A stretch of DNA of 64,000 bases, taken from positions 135,501 through 199,500 of the forward strand of contig DF237054.1 in the NCBI GenBank assembly GCA_000708835.1, written 5' to 3'. Numbering within the stretch: position 1 is the first letter of the stretch; every line of letters begins with the position of its first letter. Under the pieces are notes generated by a model. The model did no database searches. It saw only the letters and a list, made by a program, of their open reading frames with translations, and was not told the DNA's origin. The stretch comes from Klebsormidium nitens. Its lineage: Eukaryota > Plantae > Klebsormidiophyceae. Of the stretch, positions 4,891 to 37,683 are shown piece after piece. The translations under genes and the position numbers were made by a program.

Positions 4891-7800
4891 CTATTGGGTC
4901 GTTTTCTCTTCCGGCGCTTGAGCAGGGTTCATCTTTAGGTGCAGTCGCCCCGCCCCTGACGGAACGGAAGGCGGCTTCCACGGACCTTTCCGTTTCCGGG
5001 GGGTCCCGGGAGGTGTGCTCGCCGCACTCGAAGGCCCCCCCGACGCGGAACTCTCTTTCCTAGACCCGGGACCACCAGAATCTACCACCTTATCCTCTTC
5101 GCTTACACTCGTCCGAGAGTCCTGCGACAGAGAGCCGGACTTCCTGCCTGGGGTTTTCGCCTCGGTCATCTTCTCTATCGAGTTTCCGGCGCTTCTGGTG
5201 CCCGGGATCCGTCCCCGGGGTTCCGCCAGTCCGCCCCGCGGATTCCGCTGGCTGCTCACGGCAGAAGACCCCGACTGGCTCCGGGTAAGCGCCGCTCGTG
5301 GGGATGTCGGCGTGGAACGGAAACCGCTGGCGGCCGGAACGGTGCTTCCGGGAATCTCAACGTAGCTCTTCGCGGTTTTCGCCCCTTCAGCGTTACCTCC
5401 GCGCTCGCTTTGCGTCGGAACCGTCAGCACAGGCGGCCGCTTCGCTTTCGTGCCGTTCTTCGCGTTCCGTTCCACTTCCGGTCGTATGTCCGGAACGGTA
5501 ACGAAACCCGTCAGAGCATCTTTTGCATCTTGGAGCGTCTTCGGATCCTTCCCTTCGTCAAAATGACGCCAGCTTTGAGTCCTGGAGGGTGGTTGGGCGC
5601 CCAGGTCATTCCGTCCCCCGGAGTGCCGCCTGCTTTCCGCTCGGGAAGATCCGCCGGAACGGCCGGACGGGGTCGGGACTTCGGACAGTGAGAGGGGCGT
5701 CGGGAGCCACGGGTCGTCCGAAGAGATGTCGTGCACGGTGACTTCCAACCGGGCTAGATTGCCGCTGTCGGAAAGGAGTGACTCCAACCGGGGGACGTCA
5801 CCGACCGTCTGGCTCATCGTCTCTTCCCGCATCCCTGCATCAGTTCGGAATGCTTTGTGAGATGCTTGCAGATGAGTCAGTCTTTCTCCGGTGTTCGAGT
5901 GATATAAAGAAAGCAGTTTATTTTAACGCTCTTCAAATCCGGACATACGAGATAAATCTTCTTAATTCGAACGTGAAAGACGCGTCGGGCGTGCAACTTG
6001 CAAGGTGCTGTCTTCTCCGCTTTTACCTTAACCAACTTGTTCTTCCAAGCCAACATAGCCAGCGAAATGTAAAATAGATTGGTGCCTTCACTTTGCTGCA
6101 ACTTTAGACACCAATCTCGGCATGACCGAAGGTCCAACGACATTCCGAGATACAAAGTAGTAGTTATAAGTCCTAAGTCTTGATTAAACTGGGCCTACGA
6201 TGTGACTGCTAGCAGCGTTCACGTGTGATATTTCTATCCGCTAGGATGAACTGAACCACATCGTATCAACAAACTGGAATTCTAAGGTTTACAGGACTCT
6301 CCAAGCGGCTAATGACCCGCGAATTTCAAAAGCCCCTGTTGTTCCGAGTCCAAGTCTTCTACGGTTCTACTTGGGACCTCCAAGCGGTTGGATATCAAGA
6401 ATAAGGTAGCATCAGCATTGGACGATGAAAATGCCCAGCGACATATAAGCCACAGCGAAGCTCGATAAACAAACACACACCCACCAATCTTTGTACTTTA
6501 GCGTGTTGACGACTCCAGTGATTTCAAAGAAGAAAGAAGAAATGATCGAAACGGTAAGTAATTTTATTGATCTGCTTACCCATCGTAAATTGCTCCACGT
6601 GCTCCTCAAACCCCTCGCTCGCGCGGTCGCTCCGCGGGCTCGCGGCCGCGTCAAGCGCACTGAGCCGCCGGCTGGATCCTCCGTCCAGGCTGCTGACGCT
6701 GCTCTCCATGCTCGCGCGCACCGATCGCTGGATTGACGTCACCTCCAGCGAGAGAGCGCTCGCGCGCTCCTCGACCACCGTGTTCTGGCGCGAGAGCGCG
6801 CGCAGCTGCGCGAGCTCCTTCTCGTCGGGTGCCATCTCGCGCACCATGGTCGCGATGACGCGCTGCAGGCAGTAAAGTAAAGTTTGAGTTGAACATTCGG
6901 CTCTGAATAGTATAATGCGGGTTGTATGGTTGAAAACAAGGGTTTCGGGTTATATTTCGCATCGAAGGAATCTGGACCATATGTATGTCAAGAAGCTGTA
7001 GCCACGACCATCTTCAAGAAACAAAATCAGCCTGTAAACGGATAAAAGTCCGTGCGTTCTTACGCAACTCAGAACTCTCTCTTCGTATTTTAAAAGTCAT
7101 TTTCTTTGAGATGAACTCGTGGAGGACAGAACCTGAATCAAACCTCAAAGTCATGGTACCTGATTCTTAGCAGTACTCTGTGTGCCATAATCAGACGACA
7201 TGAAAAAGCGGATGCAAACTTGCAGTCTTCAACGGCGACTGGGGCTATCGTTTGATGTTGTATTGGCGAGAAGCACCAAAACTGAGGGATGAAGCTATTT
7301 TGTCTTTCTGATTGCCGGAGTGCACTGGTCCAAACGAGTGAAATCAAGTCGAAAGCTTATCAAGATATCAGGCCTTTCGAAATTACATAAGCCCAGTGCT
7401 CATGAACGAAGCCCGAGACACTATCTTTAACTGATTGTCAGGCTACAAAAATGAGCCGATGCAAACTTGCAGTCTCGAAGGCTACTGGGGCTCCCTTTAC
7501 TTCATCAAACTCCTGATGAACGGCGAGAAGCACCAAAAGGAGACTGGATATCTGTGTTCTCTTCGCGTTTGCCAAAATGACCCAGCCTAAATGGAGTTGT
7601 GTTGCAGAAATTCATGAGGCCTGCTTAATTTACACGAACTGTGTTCACGCGTGAAGCGGGCCTCACCTGCAGATGCTGCACTTGTTGCCGCAGCGCCTCC
7701 TCCCCTTCGCTCCCTGCGGCCGCGCGCGGCACTACCATCCACAGCTCGTCCGCGTGTCCGGCCACTCCCGACTCGACACGTGTCCTCGTCACCTCCAGAA

Positions 7801-10800
7801 CCTCCGCGCGCAAAACCTCGCACCGCGCCTCGCACTCCTCGAGCGCGCCGCGAAGCCATGAGATCTCGCGTTCCGAGTCCGCGCGCGCGTCCGCGGACTC
7901 CGTTGCCTGCTGCTTCAGCGCGCGCTCGAGGCGCGCGACCTCGCGCCGGAGCGAGGGGACCTCCTCGTGGGCGCGCTCGCGCGCGCTCAGCAGCGACGTC
8001 AGGCTGACGACCTGGTCCCGGAGCTCCTGCTCGACGGAGTCGCCCGCGAACGACACGTGGTCCATCTGCAGCGCGAGCGGTTCAGACCGCGCTTTGCGGA
8101 CCGGTGCCCCGTAGAGAAGGTTATCTTCAACCGATTCTGACATCACATCTTCCGTTCGCTCGTTACGGTCCGCTTCTTCTGTCCGCTCGATAGGGAGAGT
8201 TTTCGTGATGACGTCGTTGAAGTGCCGTCTTCCGGCCCCTTCTCCGCCCTCCTCAGCGGAACGCTGCAGCGTGGCTGGCGCCGAGGCCGACCGGAGCCGC
8301 TCCGCCGCGACCGCCTCCCAGGCCAAAACCTCCAAACCCCGCAGGGACGCGCGGCGCAGGCCCACGATCATCGGCGGCAGCGCGGCCGCGGTCTCGCTCT
8401 TTGCGCGCGGCTTCCCCTCGCGGCCGGCGCGCGCGCCAAACTCCTCTTCCGGTTCCCGCCCGGCCACCGGCTCCGAAACGGTGAGCGACAGGCGGTGCAT
8501 GATGCTCGCGCCCAAACCCTCCAAACCCTGGATCCGGCTCGCGCGCAGCGCCTCCGCGGCCGCGACGAGCGCCGCCTCGCGGTCGGCCAGCTCTGCGCGC
8601 AGGCTCAGCAGCTCTTCCTTCACGATGGCCACGTCGGCCTCGCGTTTTCTCGCCAATACTAGCTCCTCCCGCAGCCTCGCCACGAGCGCCTCCAGCGCCT
8701 GCCGGCTAGTATGTTCCTCGCTCTCGTTCTCGGAGCTGATGGTTGACGTCGGCGTGACGTTGCGCTGCTGCCGGCCTGCCAGCTGGCGCCTCAAGAGGGC
8801 CACTTCGAACATGAGGGCGGGAAGTTCTACGAGCGCCTGATGGTACGTTTCCAGGTTCCCATTAACCAAGGCGATCTCTGTGCCCAGGGTTGCTAAGTTT
8901 CTCTGACGGTCCACCTCCTCTCGTTGTGATCCATTCCCGGCTAGGACTTCGCCGAAAACATTCTTGCCAGCAGAAAAGCCCTCGTCAAAGTGTTCCGGAA
9001 CAACTCCGTCTGGGGTTATCCCGTCCGTTCTCCCGACGGAAACCTTCCCAATCTCGACCCGCTGTGGCAACTCGAACGAACTCGCCCTGACGTCACACCC
9101 CAAAAGCATGCTCTCCAGGCGGCTGACTCGCGCCGGCAGATCAAACGAGTCCTTGCTCGAAGCACTTTCAAACCGGGTGGGAAATGCAGTCTCTGCTGAG
9201 TCGCCTGCTTCCTCGGTTGAGATCGAACGGTCCCCAATATCATCATCGGCTTTCGCATTCACACCAACCACCGTGTCCGGTGTGAATACCCCGAGCACTC
9301 CCTCGGGCGGGTCGACGGCGGATGAAGGGTTCCTGGTCTGCTCCCCGGTGGACCGCCCCGACAGCATGCTCTCCAGCCTGGTTATCCGCACCGGCAGGTC
9401 GAGCGACTCCGCTGGCGACCGCTCGTTATTTTCTTGCAGTCCCTTCTGTTTCGCTTCCGCTTCCTCTCCAGTTCCGCTTCCGCTGACGGTCTCGCTCCCG
9501 CCCCCGCTTTCGGACTCGCTTCCGATTCCGTTTCCGTTTGCAGTCTCTCGCAGCATACTTTCGACCCGGGCTACTCGTATCGGAAGGTCTAACGAGCCCT
9601 GGGGTGTCCGTTGCTCTCCGTGGCCGCTTCCGCTTTCGCGTCCGTTTCCGTTTTCGTTTTCGTTTCCGTTTCCGGAATCCCGCTGCATACTCTCGATCCG
9701 GGTTACTCGTACCGGTAACTCGAACGAGCCCTGGGGCGTCCGTTCCTCTCCGTGGCCCGTTCCGTTTCCGCTTCCGCTTTCGGTTCCGATTCCGTCTCCA
9801 ATCTCTGGCAGCATACTGTCAAACCGGGTCACTCGTACCGGTAACTCAAACGATCCCTGGGGCGTCCGTTCCGGTGTGGCACCAGGCGAAGGCCCAGGCG
9901 AAGGAGCGACGGGGTTCCAAGCACAGCCCAGCAGAGGTTCCGCTGTTCCGCCCGATGAAGGTTCCGCCGTTCCGGCCTGAGATCGCAGCGTGTCTATCGC
10001 CTGGGAGACGGGACTGCCGGCAGCATTGCCGGTGACGCCCGTGAATGAGGCGCTGAAGCTTCTCGTTCCGCCGGAACATCCCGTTCCGGCTGCAGTGGAT
10101 TCCGCTCTAACAGTGTTGAGGCGGAGCCGTAACTCCGCGCACTGCTCGCGCAGGGCTTCCAGCTCGAGACGCTCGGCGGCTGCCAAGGCAGGCGCAGCAG
10201 GATTCACGCCATCCTCTGCGGAGCGGCAAAAGCACGTGATTTATAGCCTGCCTATGGCCGTACATATATTGCACCAGAGAGAAAAGGGAGAAAGCAAGTC
10301 CGATCGAGTGTAAGATAAAGTGTGAGACCTTTCAAACACAGCCGCTCGCTGTGACGTGAATTTGAGGGGCTGCGTGTCAATTGATTGTTTGTCGCAAGTT
10401 TGTTACAGTGCATCGCTCGTACCTGGGAAATCTTTGGATTCTCGAAGACATGAGAGGTCACCACTACGGGCCGCTTACCCATGGCGACCGGTTCCTCAAA
10501 GGCGGTGATGACCTCCGCCTCTTCTCTCGGAACCTCTCGTGGTAAATGTTCGGGGACGCCGGTCTGGTTGGGCAACGGTTTTGCAGCCGAGCTCGCTTCC
10601 AGCATGGATTCAACCTGCAAATGAGATGCGCTTTAGATCTTGAAAACAGTTACGCAAAGCATCATACAAGATGGGTCGGGTTCACAAGCCAAGAACTAAA
10701 TTCACCTAAACAGGAAAGACCCAGATTGGAGAAGCGTGCAAGATTGCTTCGGATTCAAAGCTTCGAAGCCAGAAAACGGTTCTCCTTACTCACCTCGTCA

Positions 10801-13800
10801 CTTGTTTCTGTCCCCGCAAGTGGTACGTGCCCGCTCGCGCTCAGGTTCTGGACGATTCCATGCTCTCCAAGCTTCGGCGGAATGACGATTCCGCGCTGTC
10901 CAAGCTCCGGCGGCGGAATGACGTCGGCAGAAATACGTCCGGCTCGCAAAGTGTCCAGCTCGCGTTGGAGAGCTGCGAAAATCGTGCAAATCAAAACCTT
11001 AAGTCCCCAAAGATTCTGTCTAAAGTACGCAATGCTGTTGATGAATGAAGCAACCGGTCATGACACTTCTTTCCAGAAAGGACCTCAGTACAAATGAATG
11101 AAGCGTTTCGCACATGTGATTTTGAGGGCATTAGGGAGATTATCGTTTCTACTTGAACAGGCTTAGACAAACAAGTCTGTTCGTCGGACCCCAGGAGCAA
11201 GCAGTACCCCTCTTTCGCTGTAGCTTCTCGTCATGTTTGTATGTTGAACGTGAAGCAAAATCCTCACCGGTCGCTCTGCCTTCTGCAGCCTCCAGTCCCG
11301 CTTTCAGTTCCGTCACAAGCTCTTCCGCTCCTGCCACGATGGCGGAATGAACCAGATCGTCGACTCTGTTTCCAGAGTAACCACCGTCGGTCCTGTTCAA
11401 ACCGCTCTGGGATCCGCCCACGCCTTCCGTCTCTGCCTCCCCTTCCATGCTTTCGGGCTGAGTCGACTTAGTAAACGTCGGCCTGACGTCATCCTGCCGG
11501 AGGTTTGCCAGCTGGCGCTTGCAAAGGGCCACTTCAAACATCAGCGCGGGGAGCTCTGCTAATGCCGCTCCGTACGCTTCCAGCTCGGGACTTTCCACCG
11601 GGCACGTCTTCTGCTGTTCTTGTGACTGGGTTGACTGCCCGGTTACGCCTAAACCGGGCCCACTCTCTCGACTTTCTCCAGTCTGCGTCAACCCCTCGGT
11701 TACTTCCCCCGGTTGGTTCAAAGAGAGGGCGCCGAGCATGCTTTCCAGGCGGGCCACTCGTTCCGGGAGTTCAAAGGCGTCGGAAGATATCCCGGCAGAC
11801 CCGTTGGAAGAGATCATGCTCTCCAGCCTAGTTACGCGCACCGGTAGGTCGAACGATCCGGAAGGCGACCGCTCGGTGGACTCCTCAGGGGTTTGGTCGC
11901 CGGAAGGCGGGGTGTCTTTGATGCTCTTCCGTTGGGTCACTCGGACGGGCAAGTCAAAGGAGTTGCTGGGCGACCGGTCCGCAGTGAAATGCTGCTCCTG
12001 GTCGCCGAGCAGGATAGATTCCAGCCGACTGACTCGCACGGGGAGGTCGAAGGATCCCAGCGGCGACCGGGATAGCCCATCTGCCGGTTCGGTTAGCAGA
12101 ACTTCCGCTTTCTGGTCGCCGTCCAATTCTGAACTATCGTGCGCTGATTCATTTTCCGGTCCCACATTCAGTTCCTGAATGTGAGTCCCAGCGATGGAGA
12201 CCCCTCCACCTGACGCCGTTTTCCCGACAGCCGTAGCGCTCTCCCCTGAATCTCGACTTTCTCGCCCCGTCTCTCCGGACTCCGTCTCGTCTGTCTCGGT
12301 ACCGTTCTCCTCCGTGTCCTTCCGTTCCGTTACAGTCTCGCTCGAAAGTTCCGCCGGAGCTTCTCCATCCTTGACACCCCGCCCGGTCACCTCTGCCGCC
12401 GTCTCCGTGTCTCTTCCTGCCAGGTACAACATCCGTACCAACTGCTCATTCTCTTCCCCTTTTAACTCCGCTTCTCTTCGTACCCTTTCCAATTCATTCT
12501 CCACCCTCTCCAATGTAGAAACCAGCTCTTCCGTCTCTCTCTTCGCCGCCTTCAGATTGCCACCCAGAGTCTCTTTCTCATTCAATTGCCGCGCCTTGAT
12601 CTCCGAAACCGTCGACAGCGCCAGGGTGATGTCCGCCCCCATCATCTCCGTAAACAACCGTAACTCTGAAGCTAACCCGTGTTTACCGCTCGATAAGCTT
12701 ACCAACCCGCTCAGAAGCTTCGCTCTCGCTCCAGCCATCCCCTCTTTCTTTCCCCTCGAGAACCTCTCGTTCGTTTCCAAGGTCTCTTTCAGCGCCTCAA
12801 TCTCTGATCTCGCGCTTTCCAGCTCCGCTTGGGAAACCAAGATTCGTGCTCTGCCTTCTTCGACCTCCCTCTCAGCATCCACACATCTTTTCTGTGTTCC
12901 TACGATCTCTCCCTTCAACCGTACCGTCTCTTCCTCCAGCACTCTATTAGAATCAGCCCCGGCCGCCACTTCCTCCTCCAGCCGCCGCTGCACTGATTCT
13001 AACTCCCGCCCCCTACCCTCCTCGGCGCTCTCCAAGTCCGCCACTCTGTTTTCCGCCACTTCGAGCGTTGCCGAAACCTCCCTAAACCTCTCCCCCGCGG
13101 CCGCGGCCGCGTCGCCCATCTCCGCGACCCTCAAACTCGCGGCTGCCAAGTCTCTCTCCAGCGCCGCCAAAACCTCGCCAAACCTCTCTCCCGCCGCCGC
13201 GGCCGCATCGCCCATCTGCTCGATCCTCAGGCCCGCGGCCGCCAGATCGCTCTCGAGCCTTGCCGTCTCTTCCCGCGCACTCGACAGCTCGCGTTCCGTT
13301 TCCGCTGCCGCTTGCCTGAGGTCTTCCGTTTCCGTTAGAGCGCCCGCCAGCCGCGCCTCCGCCTCATCCCGGGCCCTTTCAGCGGCCGTCACTTCGGTGC
13401 TTAGGTCAGTATGCGCCTTCTTAGCCGCTTCCAGCTCGGAGCTGACGTCAGAGTGGCCGTTATGAGCCGCCTCTAGCTCCGCTCGAACGTCAGCATGCGC
13501 CTTTTGGGCCGTCTCCAGCTGTTCGATGACGTCGGCACGCGTCCTCTGGACCGCCTCCAGCTCCGAGATGACGTCAGCGTGGGCTTTCTGAGTCTCCTCC
13601 AACTCGTGCATCGCCTCAGAGCGCGCCCTTTGCTCTGCCGCCAGCTCTAGGCTGACGTCACCATGCGCCCTCTGCGACGCCATCAGCTCTGCGCTGACGT
13701 CCGCATGGGCTTCCTGGCTTGCCACCAGTGCGGCTCTAACGTCAGCATGTTCCTTCTGGGCTTCTTCCAATCTTGCCCTGAAGTCAGCCTGGGCCGTCAG

Positions 13801-16800
13801 GGACGCCGCCAGCTCAGCGGTGACGTCAGCATGAGCCTTCTTACTGGCTGCCAGCGTGGTGCGGCGGGCGGCGCCTTCCTCAGTCAAGGCCGCCAGCTGG
13901 GCGCTGACGTCAGCGTGCGCGGACCGCGCGTTTTCGAGCTCCGCGCTGACGTAAGCGTGTTCGCTCCAAGCGGCTGCCAGCTGTCTCTCCGCGGCGGCGG
14001 CGCGGTCCTCGTTAGAAGCCAGCTCCACCTTGAGCCGGATGTTCATCTCCCGTGCTTCGGACAGATTGGCTGCAGGAACGTTGGTAATGGGTTCACAATT
14101 TGACGTGTCTCACTCGGGTGCGAATTATACTTGGGTTCGATGCTAAAACTTGACAGTAACGAACTACAAATGTCTCTTGCTTGTCCCTTGCACGTACGGA
14201 ATATCAAGATGCAGAGAAACAGATTGAACTTACATTTGAAGACGTAGAAATGCATTCTACTTCAATCTACATACCCTTAACACGCCCGCAAGGTTGATCA
14301 AGTATTCCCAATCTGTTAGACACCGTTTACAAAATTTGCAAAAAGCTGCAAGCGAGCTCAAAATAGTTGAGATTGCACGTAACAAGCACCACAGGCGCCC
14401 ACATATTTTATTAGTTTCAACAACTGCCAATACTGCAAAGCTGATACTTTCAAGAACACTACAGCTTCGTAGCTTCTACTCTTTAATCTCTGCTAATAGG
14501 CACAGCTACTTACCCGCCGCTCTAGCCTCCGCTTCCGCAAGCTCTGCTTGCAACTCTGCGACGGTCTCCCGCGCGCCTCCCACAATCGACGACAGTACCA
14601 AATCACTCACTGCTCGTTCGCTCTCCGACCCCACCCTCTCTTTTCGTTCCGCTTGCACAGAGTGTTTTACCGCCCCTCTATGTGACGCTTCGACACTTTC
14701 CGGCGCGTCTTTTTCCGGGTCTCCGCTAGTGTTCTGTGAGCTTTCGCTCCGCGGCGTTTCCGTGACGTCATGCTTGCGCCGAAGCTCTGCCAGGTGGCGC
14801 TTGAAGAGCGCCGCCTCAAACATCACAGCGGGCAGCTCTACGAGAGCCCGCCGATACGCTTCGAGCCGGGCAGTCTCCCCCGAGAACTTTTCTCCCCCCT
14901 TCTTATCCTGACCCGACTCCCCGGTTGATTCCCCCGAGCCATCACCCGCTCTGCCGGATCCACTTTCGTTCGCTGGTGCCACCGACTCGGACACAGTCCC
15001 CGCCCTTTGGACGCTCGGTGAGAATCCCGCCAGCATACTTTCCAGTCGGCTCACTCTGACCGGCAAGTCAAAGGAGCCGCTGGGCGACCGGCCCCCAGGA
15101 GCTTCCTGCCTTTGGTCGCCCAGAAGGCTTTCCAGCCGGCCGACTCGCACGGGGAGGTCGAAGGAAACGGCCTCCGATCGAGTTTCTTCTCTCGACGTAC
15201 TTTGGAGCACACGGCTTGTCGAGTCCTTTTGGGCTAGGTCTGCTGTAAAATGGTCTGAAGCCCCAACCATGTTCCCTGCTAAAGCTTTCTCTGCTGCGGC
15301 AGCAAGGACCGGAGGTGTCTGCGGTACAAACCCGGGGAACTCGGACTCCTTAGTTGCCGAATCAGGGCTCCCGGTTCTTCGCTCCCGGGCGACGTCTTCG
15401 CTTTTGCTCAGTGCCCTTTGTTCCGCTTCCGCATCCTCTCCGGTTCCGGTTCCGGTCCCGTTTCCGTTCCCAGACCCTCGCAGCATACTTTCGACCCGGT
15501 TCACTCGTATCGGGAGGTCAAAGGAGCCTTGGGGCGTCCGTTCCGGTGTACCCGAGGGACTGGGCGGAATTGCCACCGGATTCCAGGCCCACACCGGAAG
15601 CTCCTTCGGCTTGGAGCCTTTCTTTACGCTGACGTCCTCCGACGGAATCGATGCCTGACAAGCAGCGTCTTGCGCCCAAAGAATTGTGGGTCCGCCCGCT
15701 GCAGTTCCGGCGGAACCCGGCTTTGTGGGCTCGAAGAAGCCCTCCATTTGACAGCTCACGCTGCACACCGTCACCGCTTCGGCCGCCGGATTCCGGAGTG
15801 CCTCCATCAGCGGAATCGCCTTCGCCTCTCCGACCACCGCTCCAAACAGGGTCGTGGTCTCACCGTTTGCATTTCGCTGCCCAAGTTCTGCCTCAGCCTC
15901 CGATTCAGAAAGAGCAACCACACTGTTCTGTTCAGTGCTCGCTTTCCGCCCTCCGAGCTCCAAGGGAGTCTCCGAGACGGACGGAAGCTCGCGAGCGCGC
16001 ACGCCCAACCCGCCAAACTCAAACGCGCCCAGGCTGTTCGTCCGCGTCGCGGGCTCGCTGCCGGAGTAACTCGACAGAGTCGATCCCAGGAGACCGCTCA
16101 TGCCGAACGCGTCGACTCCGCTCTCTTGCGAAGTCAGCGTGACGTCAGCAGACCGCACGGAAGGCGCGTCACCCCACGCGGCGCTTTCACTTCCCCCGGT
16201 CTCTTCGAGATGCTGCTTCCCGGGCCCTTGGGGGGTCATGAAGCTGCTTAAGCGCGGTTCCGATTTATCACCCAGGCTTTCGTGCAAAGTAGAACCTTCC
16301 TCCTTGGAGCTTAAGCTAAACTGACCGGGGCTTACGTCTTCAGTGGGCTCTGGCAGGGCGTTCTGGCGTTCCTCCATTGACTTGCTCCGGTCTTCCAACC
16401 GAAGCTCCGGCGGAGCCTCAGCCTTGTCCACGCTTTCCACCGCCCTCAGTCTGTCCTCCAGCCGCGCAATATTGGCCCGCAGTTGTCTATTCTCCTCCAA
16501 AATTGGAGTCTCCTCCTTGGCTCTATCTTCTTCCAATCCACCCGCTGCTCCCACAACCGCAAGTCCAACTTGGGCTCCATCAGCCAAATCCGGTTCTGCG
16601 CTCGACTCCGCTACTTTTTTCGAAGCTTCCCGCCTTTCCGTCTCTTTGTTCTTCCCGTCTTCCTCCCTGTTCCCCCTACTCACTTCTCCCCCTACATTTG
16701 CCTCAGAGGCTTCAGCTTCTTCCACTCCCCCCTTCCTCGAGCATCCAGCCTTTTCCGTTCGTTCCGCCTGCTGCCCCTCCACCGGAACTCCGGGCTTCTC

Positions 16801-19800
16801 ACTTTCCTCCCCAGCGCTGAGCGTTTCTTCCAGAGGAGCGACCGCTCCTCCGAGCGCCGCGTTCTCCGGCGCCGCCAATTCTTTCTGCGCGAGCTCCTCC
16901 TGGAGCGCGCGCACTTCAAGGCGCAGGCCCGCGATCGCCTGCGCGGCCGTCGCGCGCTCCTCGCGCAGCCGCGCTATCTCGAGTTGCTCGTCGTGCGTTT
17001 CCGGATCTGCGCTTGCCTCTTCTGAGATACTCGCGGGTGCATCCTGCAAAAGTGGTGGCATGAACGGATCAGAGGCCGCTAATGTGAAACAGAGCTGCCG
17101 CTTGCTTGAAAGGTAGATAGCCGCTCCCTCTTGCCCTTCATAGTGATTCGTGTGTTCTTCCGGTTGTGTAGCTGTGTAAACAGCAGTCGCAATCCGGAAG
17201 TCTGCCATCAGAGACTCTGACTGACTCAGGAAAGCTTGCTGAAAGCACCTTTTTCAGAAGAGAATAAGTCATGTGGACGACACCAATTGAAGGTTTCACT
17301 TGACAGACACGCGCGTCTGCTTAACGAATATTAGAAGCACTTGAGTCCGGGAGAGAATGGAATCGTAAGAGGTATGGAAGGGCTTTCTACCCTCGAAATT
17401 ATTGCAGAATTGAGACGGTGCGCTTACCGCGGCATTGCGGCTTGCAATCTGCACGGCTGGCGGTTGAGCAGTGTCTATTAGGCCCTCATCCTGTTGCGGC
17501 CCCTCGCTGTCGATCAGAGAGTCGCTCGCAGCGCCCAGCTCCGCTTGCAGGTACTCCAAGTCGTCTTGAAGCGCTGCGGAGAAAAAAAATGTACTAAGAT
17601 GCTCATTTGTGAAGACCTCCACTTTGTCATACCAAGAGCGTGGCTCTGAGTCTTTTTAATCTTCGAATTGCTGGGCCCCTAAAAGACGGAAGAGGGAAGC
17701 AAAGAGGAGAAAGTGGTCCCGTCTGATATGAAGCTGTGAAATACCGTCATTTGAAGTGACTTGTTGAGCTCTAAGATTTTTGATGCCGATGCTAAGATTC
17801 CTGCGCAAGATCCTCCGTGCGCTGTTACGGTGCATGCCTTATGCTCAACGTTGCCGGCATACAGTCGAAGGCTCTTGACCTGAAAGAATTAGAACCTCCA
17901 CACTAATAGAATCTGTCCTTGCGAGGGATAAGAATGGTTATTCGAATTGAAACTTGAAGAGGATAAGTTTGCATCCGGCTTACCAGCGGCCATCCCCTCC
18001 GCCATCTGCAGGTCCTCCTTGACTTCCGCCAGGACCTCTTCCGCTCCGGCCATGATTGCGGAATGAACGAAGTTGTCGACCGCTTTGTCGGTCTCCAAGC
18101 TTCTGCGAGCTTCTTGCTCCGACTTGAGATTGAGGACAGCGGACTGGAGGCTCGCAGCGGTCGCGGCCTGTAACTCGTGGAGCGTAACCACTTCTTCTCT
18201 GAGGGCATTCACACTCGCAGACTCGATCTGCATTTCAACCTGCGAGGAGGAATGTAGATTCTTCAAAGTGAAGTGATGACAGTATCAAGTCCGACCTTCT
18301 GATCTGTGCAGCGTAATAAGAAGATAGACTTTGGGAGTGGTCTGTGGTGTATGAAACGGGGTTTAAAAATTGACGACTTGAGTCCTACCTTTGGAGACCG
18401 GATAAAGCGCAGTTCACTTTGCGGCCGGCTTCAATCAGTCCCAGTCTCCCAAGTTCTACAACTGATAACTTGCCCGCTTTGAGTACTCCCACGTTGTGTG
18501 GTGCAAGTACCTTGACCCAAATCTGTCGTCAATCAGTGCCTAAAATCATTCCCGGCAATTGAATGGCACTCCAAGTCCAGAAAAGCGAAGCTAATCCTCT
18601 GGCCTACTCAAAAAAAATCCCTGAGCTTCCAAAGCCGGCTTACCGTTTCCTCCTCATAACCAGCTTCCTCCTCCCGAACTTCCGGTCCGCCCTCTCCAGT
18701 TTCCGAAAGGTCCTCCTCCTCAACGCCTGTGTTCCTCCCTTTCACGATCTCCAGCTCTCTCAGTGCAACTCGCAGCTCCTCCCGGGCACTCTCAATCTTC
18801 CCGCGGGCATCGCCCACTTCCCCGTTCGCTTCATCCAGCCTGCCGCGTGCCAACGTCAGATCCTCGTTACTAGAGGTTACCTCCTCCCGAGTCCTTTCCA
18901 GCGCCTCTTGGAGGAATTTTAACTCCCCGGTAGCTTTCTCCAGCTTCCCGTGCGCCGACTCTAGTTCTTCAACGCTGGCAATCGTATCCGCCCGGTTACT
19001 CTGAAGTGCCCCCCGGCCCTCGCTCAGCGCCTCGTTTGTCGCTCGCAGCTTGCCACGTGTCAGCGCCAGATCCTGGTTGCTATCCCTTACCTCTCCCCGC
19101 GTCCTTTCGAGCGCTTCCCGGAGGCTACTCAATTCCCCGGTTTCTCTGTCAAGCCTCCCTTGGGCCGACTCTAGTTCCTCAACACTGGCAACCGTATCCT
19201 CCCGGTTCCTCTCCAGAGCCACCAGGGACTCTCTCAGCGCCTCGTTTGTAGCCCGCAACTTGCCACGTGTCAGCGCCAGACCCTCGTTGCTAGCCGTTAC
19301 ATCTCCCCGAGTCATTTCTAGCTCTTCCCGGAGGATACTTAACTCCCCCTTCGCTTTCAGGAGAATGAGCTCCCAGGTCGCTTTCTCCAGCCTGCGGTGC
19401 GCCAACTCTAGTTCCTCAACACTGGCAACCGTAGCCGCCCGGTTCCTCTGAAGACCTCCCTGAGACTCGCTCAGCGTCTCGTTTGTAGCGCGCAGCTTGC
19501 CACGTGTCAGCGTCAGATCCTCTTCGCCAGCTTTTACCTCCCCCCGAGTCCTTTCAAGCGCTTCCTGGAGGAAAATCAGCTCCCCGGTTGCTCTTTCCTG
19601 CCTTCCGTGCGCCGACTCTAGTTCCTCAACACTGGAGGCCATTTCTGCCCGATTATCCCGAAGAGCTCCCCGGGACTCGCTCAGCGCCTCGTTTGTAGCC
19701 CGCAGCTTGCCACGTGTTAGCGCCAGAACCTGGTTGTTATTCCTTGCCTCTCCCCGCGTCCTTTCTACCTCTCCCTGGAGGAGAATCAGCTCCCCGGTTG

Positions 19801-28800: not shown

Positions 28801-31800
28801 GTTAGGACAGAAAGAGAAGTGAGGTCGAGCTTGACTACTCATCAATCTTATCTAATCAATCCGCTTTAAGAGTACTCTTGTACCCTCAGAAAACGTTCGG
28901 TCGAGTGCTGCTTTATGTGCTGCGCAGTTGCATCAACAAACAACAGCGTGGGCGCAATCGACAACTTGACATCCAGATTTCTGCAGGTTCTCTTTCAGAG
29001 CTTCCAACCTGTAAGCAAATTGACTGTACCTCCCTCGTAGCATAGTCGTCCCCTAAAGCAAAAGACCTGACGCGTCTTTGAAGCGAGTTGGACCGGCGAT
29101 ATTTGGCATGTTTGCGGACGGCGCTCTTGAATCTTCATGAGAGATGAGCATAAAGAACAAAAAGAAAAGCGTGGAATAGGAATCAGGACTGCTTGAAAAC
29201 GGACGTCAAGTGCAGGTCGACAGACGAAATCCTCGAAGTTGCAAGGATACCACACTCGAACGCTTGATGGTCCACTAACTTCGGTATGATCGGCACTACC
29301 CCGACTCACCTTCTGCTTCTCGTGGCGGATCACGAAGCTTTTCCTCAGCCGCGGCGTCCCGAGCTTCCTGCTGGTTTGCATCCCTAAGCTCCCCCTCCAG
29401 GTCCCTTATTACTCCCTTAAGCTCCTCGTTCTCCGCTCTAGTTCCCCGCAGCAGCGCCAGCTCATCCTCCAAAGCTTCGAGCCCCACGTCCGCCCCGCCC
29501 TGCCACGTGGCAGCCAGCCGCGCGTTCTCCTCGCGCGCACCGCGCACCACGCGCTCCAGCTCCTTGACCTTCTCCTCCAAACCCTGAACCCCGGGGTCGG
29601 CGTCTCGCGGCCGCGTGTCGGTCTGCTCCACGACGTCCGAAGTCATCGGGCGCTCGCGCTCCTCTTCGCGCTCGCGCGAACGCGCGGCCTCGCTCCTCAG
29701 AAGCGTCACCTCCGCCTGCAGCGCCTCAAAGCCCTCGTGCTCCGCCACGTGGCACTCCGCGCGCAGAACGCCCTCCCTGTGCGCGCGCTCGACCTCGTCT
29801 GCCAGCGCCTCGCTCTCCGCGACTTTCTCCTGCAGCCGCTGCAGTTCGTCGCGCAGCGCCTCCAGCTCGCGCGCGCGCCCGGGGGTTGAGACCCTGGAGG
29901 CGGAAACGGAACCGCCGCCGGAACAAGAACGGGAGTGCGAACGCGAAATGGGTGTTTCGACCCAGACCCGGCCCACATCCGAAAGCCCAGAGAGGCCCCG
30001 GGTGTCATTTTGAACCTCTGCCTTTTCAGCGGAGATCAGAATCTCGGACCCGGGGTTTAAGCCGCGGATTTTAGCCCCCAGCTGCTCCTCCAGCTCGGAG
30101 ACGCGCGCGGCGAGCGCGACGTTCAGGGCGGCCGCGGCCGCCAGGGCCGCGTCCTTCTCCATCTCCAGGACCGGGCCTTCCCGTTTCGCCAGCGCGCTGT
30201 CAAACTGCTCTACAAGGTTGCGCTTCGCTTTAGCGCCCGATGCTGACGCGAGCCCGACCTCTGTGCCGCTGCTTTCGCTGGTGATGACGTCCTTCTCCAA
30301 CGTCTGCGGGCTTTCAGTTGCCACGTCAGCAACCTCTGAACGCTCTGTGTCTGTATCCGGATCCTCAAAGTCGATTTCGTCGGGTTTTGTTGTTAGTGCA
30401 GACGCGTCCGGTGGGCTGAAAGTCGTGTCCGTTTCCGCTTGGTAGGTGTCCGTCGTCGCTTGCAGGGGAGTCCTCGGCGGACTTATAAGGACGGGAAGCG
30501 AGAGCAGTGGAACTTCAGAGGTCTGATGGAGCGGTTCCAAGCCTCCGTCCGAAAGTAGGCCCCGCAAGTTCTCGCCGAAGACGTCCTCTTCGGTGCGGCA
30601 ACAGGGAAAGCGAGAGTGCTGTCAGCATCGAACATGATAGTTTAAGCGAGTGACAGGTTTTTTGAGATGAGCTGTTCATGCCTTTAATCCGTCACTGAAC
30701 AGAAGTGGAAGAGCCGGGTCGTTTAGGTGGAAGCTGGCCTGTAGCCTCTTCGTCACGTGTGTGCTACTCGGGCTTTTGGGGCTTGTTTTGTGATCCCTTG
30801 AATCATTCCACTCATGCAGTTCATTAACGTCGTGATTAGTAAGTTCAAAGTTTGTTCATTCTGGCTCAAAACCTGGTGAGTTCGAAATTTGGCAAGACGA
30901 AAGGCTCAAGACGAGAGAATCAGACTCGTCATACAGAATTTTTGGATTGTAAACCACATCCTCGAATTCAATGTCCATCTACTTTGTTGACAAGCGTATC
31001 GTGAGACGCTTGCAATCGTGAAGATTCACTTCTTCCACATTGAGAGGACACAAAGAACACATGCATGACTTCTGAACACCCAGATTGGAGACAAAACGAT
31101 TTACCTTGGTGAAGCTTTTTCCACTGAGCCAGAGACACGCCTGCCGCTCCACACCGGCGACCCAAAGTCGCGTATGTCGCCTCCCGAGCTCAGCGTTATC
31201 TCAACTTGGTCGCCCTCATCCTTTCCCCCGGTTTCTTGCGCGAGCGGGCCAACAAACTCCACTTCCCCGGGCGCCCTTGCCTCCAACTCCGAGGACAGTG
31301 CCGAATCCCAAGCCGCCACGTGTCCGGTTGCTCGCCCGGCGCTCCTCGCAGGCGCATCCAACGAGTCCATGTGGATGAGCTTCCCGCTCGACAGCAGCCG
31401 GTTGCCTCCCCCCGACAAAACGAAGCCCAGCTGCCCGTTCACCAAATCGTGGAAGTTGGGGGATCCCTCTGCGGCCGGGGGGGTGGAACCTAGACTGGGG
31501 GAGCTCTGGGCGCTGTCAATGCCCAGCGCCTCCAGAAGGGCCCGTGCCCCGGGCTCATCTACTGGAGAGTCCTGTCCTTTGTAACCGGAACCGGTATTCC
31601 CAGTAAAAGTTGGAGGTTGCGAATCCGCTGGTGATCCATCCTGGGGAATGGCGTCACTCAAGTTAAGCCCAATCGCTAAGGGACTCAAACCGCTCCCCAT
31701 CGAGCTGGCGCTCCTCTCTCCTTTCCCGGGGGGTACACCAGTCGCCGTAACAGGCCCAACCTTCTCCGTTTCCACACCCCCCGAGAAGCTCTTCCCGGCA

Positions 31801-34800
31801 CCGGCCAGCTTCTCGGTCATAAGGACAGCTTCCCTCAACTGGGCCTCCTTCTCGTAGAGAGACCGCTTCAGCCCCAGAACTCTCTCTTCCAGTTCGCCCG
31901 CCCGAATGCTGGCCTTCCGCCATCCGGCTTCCATCCTCTCCGCGTCCGCCTGCGCGAGCTCGCACGCGCGCTCTAGCTCCTCCACGCGTGCCTCCACTTC
32001 CGTCCGCTGGAGCTCCGCTCTCATTGCGCTCTCGTTCCGCCCCGCCTTCGCCTGGGTTTGCTCCAACTCGTGCAACGCCGCCTGCATTTGCACGTCTACA
32101 GTCTCCAGCGCTTCTTTCAGGCGCTCATTTTCTGACAGGAGCCCCTCCATTTCGCTGTCAAACCGCTGCTTTTGCTCCTCAAGCCCCGCATATAGAGTGG
32201 CCTTTTCGAGCTCAAGTCCGTCTACCTGCTCTGCAAAAGTTGCCCTTTCTGCCTCGAGGTCTGCCCTCAGCCGCTCCTCTCCAAACAGAAGAACCTCCGT
32301 CTCGCCCACGAAGCGCGCTCTCTCCTCTTCAACTATCTTCTGCAAAGCCTCAATTTCGCCGGCAGACTTCGCTCTTTCTTCCGCAATACTATTCAGCAAC
32401 GCCTCCTTCTCGACAGACAAACCTTCCAACTCAGCCACACAACGCGCAATTTTCTCTTGCAGCCGCGCATTCTCGAGCTTTGTCTCCGCGAGTTCGCTCT
32501 CAAACCACGCTGTGTCCCTGTCATTGGAATCCCTCAGCCGTTCGTTCTCGAGCGACACCCGCCTCACCTCCTCTCCCAACCGCTCGCTTTCCCCTTCCAA
32601 AGACCTTCTCAGACGCTCTTCTTCGACTTGCAGAGTCTCCATCTTATCCGCAAACCGCTCCCTCTCTTCCTCAACCGCGTCTACCAGCCGGTCTTTGTCA
32701 CTCGTCAGGTTGTCCAACTTCGCCAACAGTGCCGCGTTCTCTCCTTCCAGAAGCGCCGCACGTTCTTCCGCCGCGTCACGGGCCGTCAGAAGCTCCCGCT
32801 CGGTGCGCGCTTCAGCCTCCTCGTCACGTGCCACATGCAAGGCTCCCTGGCCGGGGAGTGCGCCTTGCGCCTCAGCAATGTCGTCTTGGCTCTTCTCTGC
32901 AACTCCATCTTCAGCCAACACTTTCGATCCCGCTCGGTCCGCTGCCGCCCCCTCTAAAATGCCAATCGCATACTTCTCTTCCTCAGCAAGCGAGCCTGCC
33001 AATCTACCTCCTTCTTCCGCCACCACTCTATTTCCCCTCACCTCTTCCTCCTGCCTGTCTGGCCCCGAATTTGCTCCATCACCGAAACCCTTTGCCCCTC
33101 GGCCTCCATTCCCCTGTGCCGCAATCGTACCGTCAGCCTGAGCAACGCCAGCTGGCATTCCGCATCCAGTTCCGGCTACCAAGAGCTGCTCCTGCATCGC
33201 CAAAATGAGGCCCTCCTGCTGCGCGCACGTCCGCTCCACCTCCGCAAACCGCTGCTCCGCCGCGCGCGCCGCGATCTCCAGCTCCGCCGCAATCTGCTCA
33301 AAGTCACGTGCCACCCGCTCCGCCGCCACCTCAGCATCTCTCGCCGCCACCTCAGCATCTCTCGCCGCCACCTCAGCATCCCTCGCTGCCACCTCAGCAT
33401 CCCTTGCCGTGGCAAGCTCTGCTTTCAGCGCCTCAGCGCTGTCGTTACTCTTCGCAGCAGTGGCGCGGAGGGTTTTCAGCTCTGCTAACAGGCCCGCAAT
33501 ACGCTCATCTCTTTTTGCAAGATCTAGGGCGAGCGCCGCAACTTGGCCCTCTGCCAAACCAAGGTCCGCAGATTGCGATGCAGCGTCCGCCTCCGATCGG
33601 AAGAACTCATTTGCAGTCAGAGCTAGCTTCGTTTGGAGTGCAAGCGCGTGCTCTTCTGCTGCCGCTAGGTCAGCTTTGACTCCTGCCACGTTGTCCACTT
33701 CTCCTCTGAGCGCCGCAATGTTCCCATCCTTCTCAGCGACTTCCTCTTCGAGATGCAAAAGCTGCTCCGCCCCAGCCGCAAGTTCCACTTGCATGCGCTC
33801 GGTGCCCTCCGAGAGCACATCAATTTGCGCCTGTAGATCTGCAATCTGTGCCTGGAGGTCAAAGTCTTCCGCCCCCCCAGCCTGCGCCAGGCCTTTTGGC
33901 CCCCCTGGAATGCCGACCACCAGCTCATTTCCCCTTTCTTTGGCTATGCTGTCCTTTGCCAACGTGTCCAAGAGCTGCCCCACTTCAGCGAAGTAGGCGC
34001 CAAACGAGGCTTCTAGGTTGTCAACTACCGTTGCAAACTGAACTTTAGTGGCAAGCGAACCCTCTGCTATTGGGCCCCGTTTTGGTGTTTCAGCCTTTGG
34101 TTCTGCTGCAGACTCTGGACTCTGTCCGCTTGGACTCGGCGCAGCAACAAGAGCGTCGGTATTGGTAGGGGCCAGTGTAGTTTCTTGGCTCTCCTGATGC
34201 CACTTGGCTAAGCCCTGCCGAGCACTCTGCACTGATGTCTCGATTGCCGTCAGCTGCGCAGCCTGCTTTGACAGACTGTGACTGTCCTTGTCAGGAACCT
34301 TTGCATTTCCCTCCTCTAGCTGCCGGTTGCGCTCTTGAGCAATCTGAATGGAGAAAAGCAACAGAATGATAGCTTTAGGGATAACCCTGTGGAGATTGAT
34401 GCTGAGAAGGGACCATCAATCTTGGATCGAGATGAGCGGAGGTGCTTCTGAAAAGCTTCTTTGCCCGATTGAAGTCCGAAGGGACAATATGCACGGAATG
34501 TTTGAGGAGCACAGGGGTAAGATCATCAGGGATCTACTAAAGTGGCCATCCGCGTAGTTGGAGCTCAAATGCGTCTTTTTTGAAATGTTGCATGCATTCC
34601 CTTCCCTTTGATCAGCCCGACCGAGGTTTTTAGGGTACATCACATAAGAAAAAGGTTCTCAAATAAGACTTACCAGCAGGTCTTTCTCCCGCTCGTATAG
34701 CGCCTTTTCAAGGTAGAAGATCTCCGCCTGGCTTAGGACGAGCCGCCTTGATAGGTCTTCATACTGGAAATACAGGAGCTCATGTTTACCCATCGGTCAA

Positions 34801-35136
34801 TAAGTGAGAGCTTGCAGCATGATCTGCTGTTCTCACGCACCGTCCCTGCTTTGCATTGCTGCCACTGTTCACAGTGAAAAGCTTCAGACAGCTGCTCAGG
34901 AGCTTCTCCTATTGGCAAGAAGAGAAGGCCCGCATGAGAGATGATCATGGCATTGCCTACCAAAGCTCTGTTGCATTTAAGAAAGTAGGCGGCCTGCATG
35001 TATACTTATCTCCAGTGAAGAGGCAAAAGTGAAAACAAGACGTACTTACCTGCTTTAGCTCCTCTTCTCCCAGGTGTTGCGATCGCTGAAGGCGATAGCT
35101 TATGTGCCCCTCCATCAATTTAGCTGGGTCAGCCAT
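4891..35136 (-). CDS. Giant (~7,654 aa) acidic coiled-coil and repeat protein with basic S/P/R-rich C-terminal tail, 18 exons
   Basis: Manually joined exons (minus): 35136-35050, 34763-34674, 34343-31105, 30592-29310, 28648-22533, 22077-21840, 21523-21287, 20861-20740, 20371-18644, 18239-17984, 17573-17428, 17043-14514, 14069-11268, 10972-10794, 10614-10479, 10215-7667, 6862-6580, 5834-4891; total 22,965 nt. Sixteen junctions are GT-AG with matching phase; 31105/30592 matches phase only with an AC acceptor. All long minus-strand ORFs of the track (1086, 423, 2008, 589, 900, 965, 860, 313 aa) fall into this chain and share A/E/L/R-rich heptad composition. No catalytic domain recognised. Confidence 0.75.
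7205..7545. repeat. Intronic degenerate duplication (~250-nt period) inside the giant gene
   Basis: gatgcaaacttgcagtct...actggggct...ggcgagaagcaccaaaa occurs at ~7210-7285 and again at ~7457-7540. Confidence 0.8.
13372..13959 (-). repeat. Coding tandem repeat, 42-nt / 14-aa unit (HADVxAELxAxQxA), about 14 units
   Basis: The translation of ORF 11149-14046 shows HAYVSAELENARSA, HADVTAELAASLTA, HADVRAALVASQEA, HADVSAELMASQRA, HGDVSLELAAEQRA and further units. Confidence 0.9.
18815..19935 (-). repeat. Coding tandem repeat, 210-nt / 70-aa unit, five full copies plus a partial sixth
   Basis: The unit LALTRGKLRATNEALSESRGAL..NRA..VASVEELESAHGRLEKATGEL..LQEALERTRGEV recurs; DNA anchor ccacgtgt(c/t)a recurs near 19056, 19266, 19503, 19713 and 19920. 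Confidence 0.95.
23395..25365 (-). repeat. Coding repeat of ~110-120 aa (EELLxARxxLADxFA...ECARKxxxLRxLREEL), six copies
   Basis: In the 2008-aa ORF: ECARKRGQLRAIREDL, ACERKERKIVSIHREL, ECARKRGMLRALREEL, ECARKAGQLRALREEL, ECARKGEKLRSLRTEL, ECAGKEEKLRTLEAEL, each preceded by a matching helical block. Confidence 0.9.
33323..33408 (-). repeat. Near-perfect 21-nt tandem repeat x4 encoding one heptad (RDAEVAA)
   Basis: gccacctcagcatc(t/c)ctcgc(c/t) is repeated four times; the protein reads ARDAEVAARDAEVAARDAEVAARDAEVAA. Confidence 0.95.
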
Positions 35137-35974: not shown

Positions 35975-36211
35975 CTACACCACATTGCGCTTGCAAACCA
36001 TTTTGAACCACAGCCGCCTTGCACATTTTCCCATCTTTCTATTCGGAGAGAAAAGGTTCTTAGCGAAGTACTCTTTGCAGAGTCTGAGGGAACATGGCTC
36101 ACGCCGCTGTCGGACGGCTTGCGGTGCCTTTGGCATCGCCCGAGCTTCTGAGAGCAACAAGCAACAGGTCAGCAAGCACCAGCTGCTGTTCCGCAGCTTA
36201 TGCGCTTCCAT
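35975..36211 (-). CDS. 78-codon ORF with signal-peptide-like N-terminus; small secreted peptide or uORF of the giant gene
   Basis: The ATG at 36211 lies 20 nt inside an apparent spliced exon (acceptor gtttcag at 36232, donor CAG/gtaagt at 36420). It reads MEAHKLRNSSWCLLTCCLLLSEARA followed by a K/R- and Cys-containing segment. No homolog recognised. Confidence 0.25.
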   Translation of the reverse strand: MEAHKLRNSSWCLLTCCLLLSEARAMPKAPQAVRQRREPCSLRLCKEYFAKNLFSPNRKMGKCARRLWFKMVCKRNVV

Positions 36212-36312
36212 CTTCTTCCGGGGGGGCAGCCCTGAAACGAAACAGGGCAGGACTTAGCTTTTTGGGGCAGGGGGTTGTGCGGGGTTTTGAGGCGCAAGCT
36301 GGCGGAGTTAGA

Positions 36313-37683
36313 ATGGCTCTAGCAGTGCACCATGAGGGGGACCCATCTACTGTGAATCCAACTGGTTTGCACGAGACCATGCTCGACAATGTTTCAGCAA
36401 GTGAGGTGAGAAACACTTACCTGCTGTGCGTCACAATCTGATCCTTCTGTGTGAGATTGCTAGAGTTTCTCGCCTTGCGGGCTTGACAGGGATTTAAATT
36501 GAAAGAAGTTCTAGCCTTAAAGTTAAACAGTGTCCCGTGAAGTACTAAACTTTTCGACTTTTTAAAGAACAGACTTGTTAGGAAGTTTTGAAGGCATCAC
36601 TTTATGAGCGACACTTAAGTCTCTTGAATGTAGGTCCATGATGTAATTGTTGGCATCTACCTGGCGCTTTTGCAGCCATTTGAGTTTAATCTTATCAGTA
36701 CCCACGTCATTATTTTATGATTGTGCTTTCAATGTCGGGCATTATCCAAATGACTTCCCTCAAGGGAGCACAACTGGTTTGCTAAAAGTATCCGCCCTCG
36801 AAGGTTCTTGCATCAACCACCTGCAGCAAGCCGATCAACAGTGTGTACTCAGCCTGATCAATGGAGCTTTTGTCGGCAGGTGTTTCATGATGAGGACAAG
36901 GGCATCACGTGCTACGAGACTCCCCTGGGGGAGATTGTGTGCGAGGGAATCGACGACGGTCCGCATTTTTCGTCCAAGGAGCTGCCTCAGGCCAAGAGGT
37001 ATGTCAGAGTGCAACTTGTAGTTGCTTTTACTGGATTTGGTATCGTTTTTACGAGCGAGGGCTGGCAGAGTCTGGTCTGGTTGATATTGAAGTAAACTCA
37101 TCTGCCGCTTCTTCGGTCCTTGTCAAGCGGCCGTTTTTCACACCTTTTCAGTCGCGCCTCTGTCAAGGCCGCCACTGTGTTGTTTGTATGGTGTCTGTCG
37201 CTGTTGATGCTGTGCTACGTCAAGTACTGAGGCTGGTTACGGGAAGTTCCACCATTTTCGGTGGTTCAACGCACTAATTTCGCCTTGACTGGTGGGATAC
37301 ATGGTCAAATGTTTTGCTTACTAGATAACCCTGCGCCAATGCAACCAAGGTAGATGAAAACTTGGGAATACTGCAACGCATTTTACAATCCATCTTAGTG
37401 CTTTCTATGTTCAAAGTAATTGACACAGGGGGCCTAGCCAACAAACTCACCTTGATATAGGTTAAAGACCTTTGTTGTGATAAATCCTGAAGCGCTGGAC
37501 CCCTGCGTTGTTCACAGGATGGTTGGCGCACTTCACAGCGGGCTGGACCAGGTCAAGGCCCGCGCCATGAAAGTGCGGAGGGCATTGCGCGACAACGAGC
37601 CCCTCGAAGGCGCCATGTGTGTGACAGACAGTGAGGGGCACGTCGAGTGTGACGGATTGGACGAAAGCCACGTTTGCATGTAG
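36313..37683 (+). CDS. Small (~125 aa) 3-exon protein of unknown function with two C-x5-G-x3-C-[DE]-G-x-D motifs
   Basis: Exons 36313-36405, 36880-36998 and 37518-37683 join with GT-AG sites and matching phases (0, 2). Motifs are CYETPLGEIVCEGIDDGPHF and CVTDSEGHVECDGLDESH. Confidence 0.75.

Follow-up and report, generated by a model that had tools for sequence, protein, structure and literature searches.

Eight long open reading frames on the minus strand span approximately 30 kb of the Klebsormidium nitens DNA analyzed here (the window, a stretch of 64,000 nt to which all coordinates refer). Are these frames separate genes or exons of a single one, and does this genome make the very large protein that they would encode together? 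An earlier note on the sequence had joined the frames through ten small exons into one coding region for a coiled-coil protein of about 7,650 residues.

Gene organization

The eight long frames are present, and an independent splice-chain search recovered all ten small exons and all 17 introns. The locus has 18 exons extending from 35136 to 4891 on the minus strand (as do all exons below), and 17 of 17 introns in this model are GT..AG. The single frame of 22,965 nt described in the earlier note (7,655 codons with no internal stops) is reproduced exactly, but only with exon 4 starting at 30595, in which case the preceding intron would end in CG rather than AG. Its consistent phase is seen at 16 of the 17 junctions, but junction 3–4 fails, with CG at 30597–30596 and a join observed in RNA (31105 to 30587) that shifts the frame. 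GT..AG introns everywhere and a frame kept at every junction are therefore not found together, owing to this one join. All searches were done exon by exon, and the joined spliced model was used for length, stop and composition counts only.

In the four gaps holding small exons none of 100 shuffles matched the observed chain score; for exons 6, 7 and 8 the score is 44.7 versus a maximum of 15.7 in the shuffles. The shuffles say nothing about the two single-intron gaps, between exons 4 and 5 and between exons 12 and 13. The basis for the exon 4–5 junction is its phase 1, conserved in four relatives (L001, J, L007 and L008), and that for exon 12–13 is a phase-1 junction in L005 alone, J having one such module only. 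These related algal loci are L001 and L005 (two contigs of one relative), J (L002 plus L003), L007 and L008.

Exon 1 (35136–35050) has 29 codons, beginning with the ATG at 35136–35134, upstream of which there is an in-frame stop, and ending at the donor CAG/GTAAGT; both the 29 residues and the donor are conserved in L001. Exon 2 (34763–34674; 30 codons, YEDLSRRLVLSQAEIFYLEKALYEREKDLL) is the best-conserved piece of the gene: its tblastn match, upstream flank included, has 93% identity in L001 and 80% in L002, and both of these conserve the acceptor and the donor. Two other features near the start were considered and rejected. One is an extra small exon at 34908–34873, possibly part of the earlier model; it is not conserved in L001, and the frame closes without it, exon 1 and exon 2 each being phase 0. 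The second is the ATG at 34793 as a different start codon, which L001 lacks. Exon 3 (34343–31105; 3,239 nt) aligns with L001 over 1,110 aa at 65% identity and ends in phase 2 at the donor CCAAG/GTAAAT. The TAA that follows it at 31103–31101 is part of this donor and is only an apparent stop.

Exon 4 as observed extends from 30587 to 29310, with the in-frame version of the earlier note starting at 30595. It is 75% identical to L001 and 46–49% identical to the more distant loci, and its conserved blocks include GLLSDGGLEALH, LEKHVITSESS and RVSTPGRARELEALRDELQRLQEKVAESEALADEVERA. Exon 5 (28648–22533) is 6,116 nt long with 2,038 full codons, and is 60% identical to P0001 over 99% of the exon. Exons 6, 7 and 8 (22077–21840, 21523–21287 and 20861–20740) are all conserved in L001, phases (0,1,1,0) included. 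Exon 9 (20371–18644) contains, at 18836–19926, a tandem array of about five repeats of 70 aa (210 nt) each, and the relative's two contigs both break inside this exon (the end of L001 and the start of L005). Exons 10 and 11 (18239–17984 and 17573–17428) were found by the chain search with its shuffles and are both conserved in L005, where the homologue of exon 11 runs on into that of exon 12 as one open frame.

Three large exons, 12, 13 and 16, are paralogous modules. The first (exon 12, 17043–14514) has three copies of a conserved 20-residue motif (15543–15484, 15183–15124 and 15093–15034). The second (exon 13, 14069–11268) has two copies (12072–12013 and 11874–11815) as well as nine HADV-type motifs, whose spacing is mostly 14 or 28 residues. 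Over 979 aa it shows 65% identity with L005. Exons 14 and 15 follow (10972–10794 and 10614–10479), the former conserved in L005 and the latter found by the chain search only. The third module (exon 16, 10215–7667) has four copies (9871–9812, 9745–9686, 9613–9554 and 9424–9365) and a strongly conserved end (...DELWMVVPRAAAGSEGEEALRQQVQHLQ), and it matches J with 39% identity over 948 aa (E 2e-126). Exon 17 (6862–6580; 283 nt) shows 59% identity with J and 78% with L005, and all three agree in the length of this exon modulo 3 and in the phases on either side (0, 1). Exon 18 (5834–4891) encodes a basic Ser/Pro/Gly-rich tail with a pI of 10.1 (11.3 for the last 150 aa), a PRKRK cluster (5001–4987) and seven S/T-P sites, and ends with the stop TAG at 4893–4891, the position of which is conserved in L005 and J.

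RNA evidence and the exon 3–4 junction

RNA-derived contigs were placed on 6 kb of the gene, where two junctions are seen (exons 2–3 and 3–4); support for the other 15 of the 17 comes from comparison with relatives. The origin of these runs from RNA is the tool's guess, and its only support is the pair of spliced joints together with the confinement of the contigs to exons. Contig X4:13 joins the 3′ end of exon 2 to exon 3 in frame, and other contigs lie along exon 3 and on exon 4. At the next junction, contig X2:5 (348 nt, depth 4.4, with 236 and 112 nt flanking the joint) joins 31105 to 30587, 8 nt downstream of the in-frame start at 30595, and removes a GT..AG intron of 517 nt (31104–30588). 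No other contig of the gene in that run is deeper than X2:5, and the out-of-frame junction is known from this one assembled contig of one run. The acceptor in use (AAG, its AG at 30589–30588) is the first AG past a short gap downstream of a branch-like CTGAC, and the first seven AGs at this junction are all out of frame. The lost acceptor (30597–30588) reads TTGCCG/CACC, where L001 has CTGCAG/CACC.

The frame shift caused by this join leads to a TGA at 30517–30515, which X2:5 reads through, and the predicted product is 1,162 aa long, consisting of the first 1,138 residues and 24 out-of-frame residues. The claim that this genome makes a 7,650-aa protein is not borne out, since the sole exon 3–4 junction observed is out of frame and the open frame ends after 1,162 aa. 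Peptide fragments spanning the exon 3–4 junction were sought in the RNA assemblies and not found. Downstream of the break 6,490 codons are still open, a frame of 19.5 kb.

Conservation in related algae

A search of 1.84 billion representative proteins turned up only four relatives. The four related loci keep the exon order, the intron phases and the stop position, and all four that include junction 3–4 (L001, J, L007 and L008) have a phase-2 donor AG/GTAA and an in-frame acceptor there. Together these argue for one ancestral giant open frame, with a break that is specific to this genome. The GTAA donor that holds the TAA at 31103–31101 is conserved in five of five genomes. Exons 5, 13 and 16 have few relatives, all of them algal, and no land-plant relatives (exons 3 and 4 were outside the large-library searches), in agreement with the suggestion that the protein is lineage-restricted. 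Metagenome scans with an exon 4 profile and with a DNA pattern gave no match, and a literature search found nothing relevant.

Protein architecture

The modelled full-length protein has approximately 7,655 residues and a mass of about 817 kDa, is acidic, and has no recognizable head. Helical rods alternate with disordered linkers and the protein ends in a basic tail; these features and the internal repeats are as first described from the sequence. AlphaFold2 models of exon 4 show disorder for residues 1–120 and then three long helices, and those of exon 16 show helices and disorder only, the helices in the two exons being 76–91 residues long. Heptad-like hydrophobic spacing covers 32% of the model versus 12% of shuffled sequence by a crude, home-made measure that is not a standard predictor, and with the long helices this places the protein in the coiled-coil class. 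The earlier note had recognized no catalytic domain, and neither a catalytic nor a globular domain emerges here: Pfam gives sub-threshold coiled-coil noise only across all exons, a PDB sequence search with three regions has no match, and AlphaFold2 predicts no globular fold in the two best-conserved regions.

The 20-residue motif, ER[ST]PxGSF[DE]LPVRVxR[LIV]ESM, is present in nine copies here, displayed by the linkers, and four in J, and its peptide form, with an S/T-P site, is ERSPSGSFDLPVRVSRLESM. Four modules each end with LVxSAIxAGAEE..RAA, followed by a phase-1 intron.

Origin and fate of the gene

The explanation we favor, with moderate confidence, is that this is one 18-exon gene for an ancestral acidic rod protein of approximately 7,655 residues, and that the intron 3 acceptor has been lost in the sequenced strain such that the product is truncated. 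The gene would have grown through internal duplication of sets of exons. The acceptor AG would then have become CG in this strain, with the spliceosome taking the next AG, 8 nt downstream, and shifting the frame; the mRNA would therefore encode 1,138 residues and 24 more out of frame. The lesion is probably very recent because the 6,490 downstream codons are uninterrupted. An intact frame of 19.5 kb is unexpected in a dead region, and the tail could still be translated; the two options are a very recent lesion and a tail that reaches expression by another route. As to role, where the earlier note had suggested a filament or tether, the most likely inference is a very long structural scaffold or tether, whose repeated 20-residue peptide would serve as a multiple docking site for one partner and whose ends would be anchors.

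The alternative that fares best, which we nonetheless consider unlikely, is that a full protein of 7,6xx residues is still made using an in-frame acceptor further downstream (exon start at 30481, 30472 or 30415), with X2:5 representing a non-productive by-product. Three in-frame AGs are indeed available 106–172 nt downstream of the acceptor used, the downstream codons are all open, and one contig only covers the junction. However, that contig is as deep as the others of the gene in the same run and it reads 30481 as exon, and TTATAAG/ and CCGCCGAG/ are poor acceptors. The in-frame isoforms would also lose 38, 41 or 60 residues of the N-terminal part of exon 4; the 38- and 41-residue losses remove the conserved block FGENxxGLLSDGGLExLH, and the 60-residue loss also affects conserved positions further in.

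A still less probable reading is that the gene is in the course of splitting into one for the 1,162-aa N-terminal protein and one for a separate protein of approximately 6,370 aa, whose internal start would be exon 4's first in-frame Met (30162–30160). The intact downstream frame and the similar depth of RNA contigs on exons 3 and 4 are consistent with this, but the Met is not conserved (it is Asp in L001), and exons 3 and 4 are on one spliced RNA. A broader proposal of which we are equally doubtful is that the protein represents an undescribed class of giant multivalent scaffolds confined to Klebsormidium-like algae, the longest coiled-coil-type prediction in the green lineage, that functions through arrays of ER[ST]PxGSFDLPVRVxRLESM, and that the reference strain is in the midst of fission into a 1,162-aa head and a still-expressed tail of approximately 6,400 aa.

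That the long frames are several independent neighboring genes is very improbable and already largely refuted: each can be read alone and a stop-like TAA follows exon 3, but this TAA lies within the conserved donor, canonical sites close every gap, with phases that are conserved, most of the long frames lack a conserved start, exons 11 and 12 form one frame in a relative, and the RNA is spliced from 31105 to 30587 and therefore has no poly(A) site or restart at 31101, where a transcript end would, according to the earlier note, have pointed to several genes.

If the ancestral protein is made in the relatives, few non-enzymatic proteins predicted in the plant lineage would match it in size. The family is an orphan one, and its short peptide, cleanly repeated and highly conserved, makes the binding partner an attractive thing to look for. 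In practical use of the reference genome, annotation of the locus as a single 7,655-aa protein needs a caveat, and, given the splice-acceptor lesion and RNA that predicts truncation, the strain may be a natural knock-down of the gene.

Comparison with known systems

Scaffolds of microtubule-organizing centers and spindle poles (centrosomin/Cnn, Spc72, SnaD, pericentrin/AKAP450 and NuMA) share with this protein a giant acidic coiled coil and a basic Ser/Pro-rich tail with S/T-P sites. The nearest feature clusters in the Atlas are of this type, with language-model look-alike scores of 0.88–0.91 and low recognition, and there is a weak Pfam match to Cep57_CLD. However, CM1 (Cnn_1N) is absent by Pfam in every exon and a PACT domain is likewise not detected, and the likeness seen is one of composition only.

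The NMCP/CRWN nuclear lamina proteins are also plant-lineage coiled-coil rods that have a PRKRK-type cluster and a basic tail. The protein here is approximately seven times longer, and searches with exons 5, 13 and 16 turned up no land-plant relative.

Golgins and other long tethers such as giantin and TMF resemble it in their very long helical rods, broken by disorder, and in lacking an enzymatic domain, and the Atlas look-alike search returned generic coiled-coil clusters, including TMF-like ones, with low recognition. Golgi-targeting domains (GRIP, GRAB or TMF_TATA_bd) were not found above family threshold by Pfam, the only matches being TMF_DNA_bd at 16–18 bits (cut-off 35) and, in a relative, TMF_TATA_bd at 10 bits; GRIP, GRAB, the TMF C-terminal targeting domain and the membrane anchor of these proteins are all absent. 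The protein encoded here, in contrast, would be two to three times longer and adds to the rod an array of the conserved 20-aa motif.

Structure of the giant gene and its relatives

From 34415 down to 4894, the minus strand has eight frames without stops, 343 to 2,049 codons in length and all with a high content of E, A, L, R, G and S. Six of the seven intervening gaps were closed with canonical sites by a splice-chain search whose score combines splice donors and acceptors, frame openness and codon usage, and for the four gaps needing small exons the observed chain score was unapproached in 100 shuffles (44.7, 38.3, 20.3 and 28.9, against best shuffled scores of 15.7, 12.3, 15.5 and 12.6, respectively). 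The 5′ exons were taken by direct reading. The full model (35136 to 4891) has eight long and ten small exons and 17 GT..AG introns of 179–804 nt each, and its exons sum to 22,965 nt (7,655 codons) with no internal stops, provided that the start of exon 4 is forced to 30595. This is exactly the length proposed in the earlier note, and because the totals match we take the two models to be identical. The basis for 15 junctions is comparison with relatives, and for the other two (exons 2–3 and 3–4) it is RNA.

All searches were run exon by exon, and figures for the joined model come from scripts only. The 2,049-aa exon gave four protein matches, and of 1.84 billion representative proteins the 871-aa exon matched only four. 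The contigs encoding the matched proteins are orthologous loci. L001 and L005, from one Logan run, have ~60–75% protein identity to the window gene; L002 and L003 (together J), on one 192-kb JGI metagenome contig, have ~32–42% identity across most long exons; and L007 and L008 are further orthologous loci. L007 and L002/L003 are on different contigs of the same JGI sample (3300060284), each with a copy of the giant gene (ORFs of 945, 560, 1,783 and 2,963+ aa in L007 versus 942, 536, 1,819 and 2,806 aa); the two copies come from related algae or from two haplotypes, or else reflect a duplication.

Exon order is unchanged from the 30-codon exon 2 through the last exon, intron phases agree wherever comparison is possible, and the stop codon is at the same aligned place in the relatives. 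The earlier proposal of one gene, rather than several with, for example, a separate start near 17220, is favored by L005, in which the exon 11 homologue continues into the exon 12 homologue as a single open frame. By tblastn, exon 2 together with the sequence just upstream matches L001 at 93% identity and L002 at 80%. The 33 nt upstream of the exon 2 acceptor (34764–34796) are kept in L001, and in the window they include an ATG that shares the exon 2 frame (MGKHELLYFQ/YEDL...). Because L001 lacks this ATG, conservation of a branch point and pyrimidine region is a likelier explanation than a start codon. Upstream of the gene, the minus strand also has several short coding segments (35978–37867) that are conserved in L001 (59–2410), with 45–96% protein identity and in the same order; they are probably part of a neighboring multi-exon gene that is syntenic in L001.

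A frame break at the exon 3–4 junction

The consistent phase claimed at every junction in the earlier note fails at exons 3–4. In the in-frame model intron 3, which follows exon 3 (31105..34343), ends at 30597–30596 with CG instead of AG, and the joint in RNA is out of frame. RNA contigs were aligned only to 28350–34349; those identical to the window (≤1 differing letter) are from four runs of one study and all are on exons. In one of these, X2:5 (348 nt at a depth of 4.4), 31105 is spliced to 30587, a joint that skips 517 nt with GT..AG on the minus strand. Because this joint crosses 31103–31101, the TAA there is not the gene end, and the poly(A) or restart at 31101 that would indicate separate genes is absent. 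The intron 3 donor is phase 2, leaving two codon bases, and the acceptor used is 8 nt beyond the in-frame position, so that the message continues as ...EKASPRGRLRRELAGPTFGRRLGTAPSDL up to a TGA at 30517–30515. The resulting open reading frame is 1,162 residues, with the frameshift seen in one contig, X2:5, which continues as exon past this premature TGA. In another contig, X4:13, the alignment stops at 34344, and the 21 unaligned letters beyond it match the unique 3′ end of exon 2 exactly, confirming the exon 2–3 junction in frame.

In all four relatives intron 3 has a phase-2 AG/GTAA donor and an in-frame YYYCAG acceptor, the site being CTGCAG/CACC in L001 versus TTGCCG CACC in the window. 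Ancestrally the gene was therefore a single giant ORF, broken only in the window genome. The choice of 30587 is that predicted by the 3′ splice-site scanning model after loss of the normal AG; none of the first seven AGs after a branch-like CTGAC is in frame, and the earliest in-frame AG gives an exon start at 30481.

The same donor in all five genomes (the window, L001, L002, L007 and L008) places an in-frame TAA directly after exon 3, at which ORF-based gene callers therefore terminate the protein, as those used on the Logan and JGI contigs did.

There are no stops in the 6,490 codons downstream of the break. On a rough estimate that assumes ~4% of substitutions create stops and indels occur at ~1/10 of the substitution rate, a neutral 19.5-kb frame is expected to break after ~0.1% divergence, which leaves two options, a very recent lesion or continued translation of the tail. 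A minor in-frame isoform could be the template for such translation, although isoforms of this kind would lose N-terminal exon 4 sequence, at minimum the conserved block FGENxxGLLSDGGLExLH; the tail could also be translated from an internal start, although the first downstream Met (30162–30160) is not conserved.

Predicted protein and turnover of the rod

Script computation for the in-frame model gives ~817 kDa and a pI of 4.7, and by a crude measure of our own its heptad coverage is 32%, versus 12% when shuffled. The last exon has a pI of 10.1, seven S/T-P sites and a PRKRK cluster. AF2 models of the two best-conserved regions contain long helices with intervening disorder and nothing else, and exon-by-exon searches of Pfam, PDB and Atlas gave no match above noise. 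The internal repeats described earlier are confirmed: exon 9 contains about five units of 70 aa, and the large exons 12 (14514..17043), 13 (11268..14069) and 16 (7667..10215) are paralogous. Each of four modules closes with LVxSAIxAGAEE...RAA and then a phase-1 intron, and nine HADV-type motifs occur in exon 13, most of them spaced by 14 or 28 residues.

L005, compared over 1748–1900, has no equivalent of intron 11 or of the first ~217 codons of exon 12 (16393–17043), and its exon 11 runs straight on into the remainder of exon 12; it looks as if rod sequence was gained or lost in one lineage. The distant orthologue J has a single 2,825-codon coiled-coil exon mid-gene (J 17207–25681) with no alignable similarity to window exons 9–13. 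The rod changes fast, while the gene ends and short motifs stay conserved.

We infer a role for the protein as a tether or scaffold. The pattern ER[ST]PxGSF[DE]LPVRVxR[LIV]ESM is present in nine copies in the window gene and four in J, and the J copies are nearly unchanged amid flanking sequence that is only ~39% identical, as would be expected of a docking peptide located within a disordered linker.
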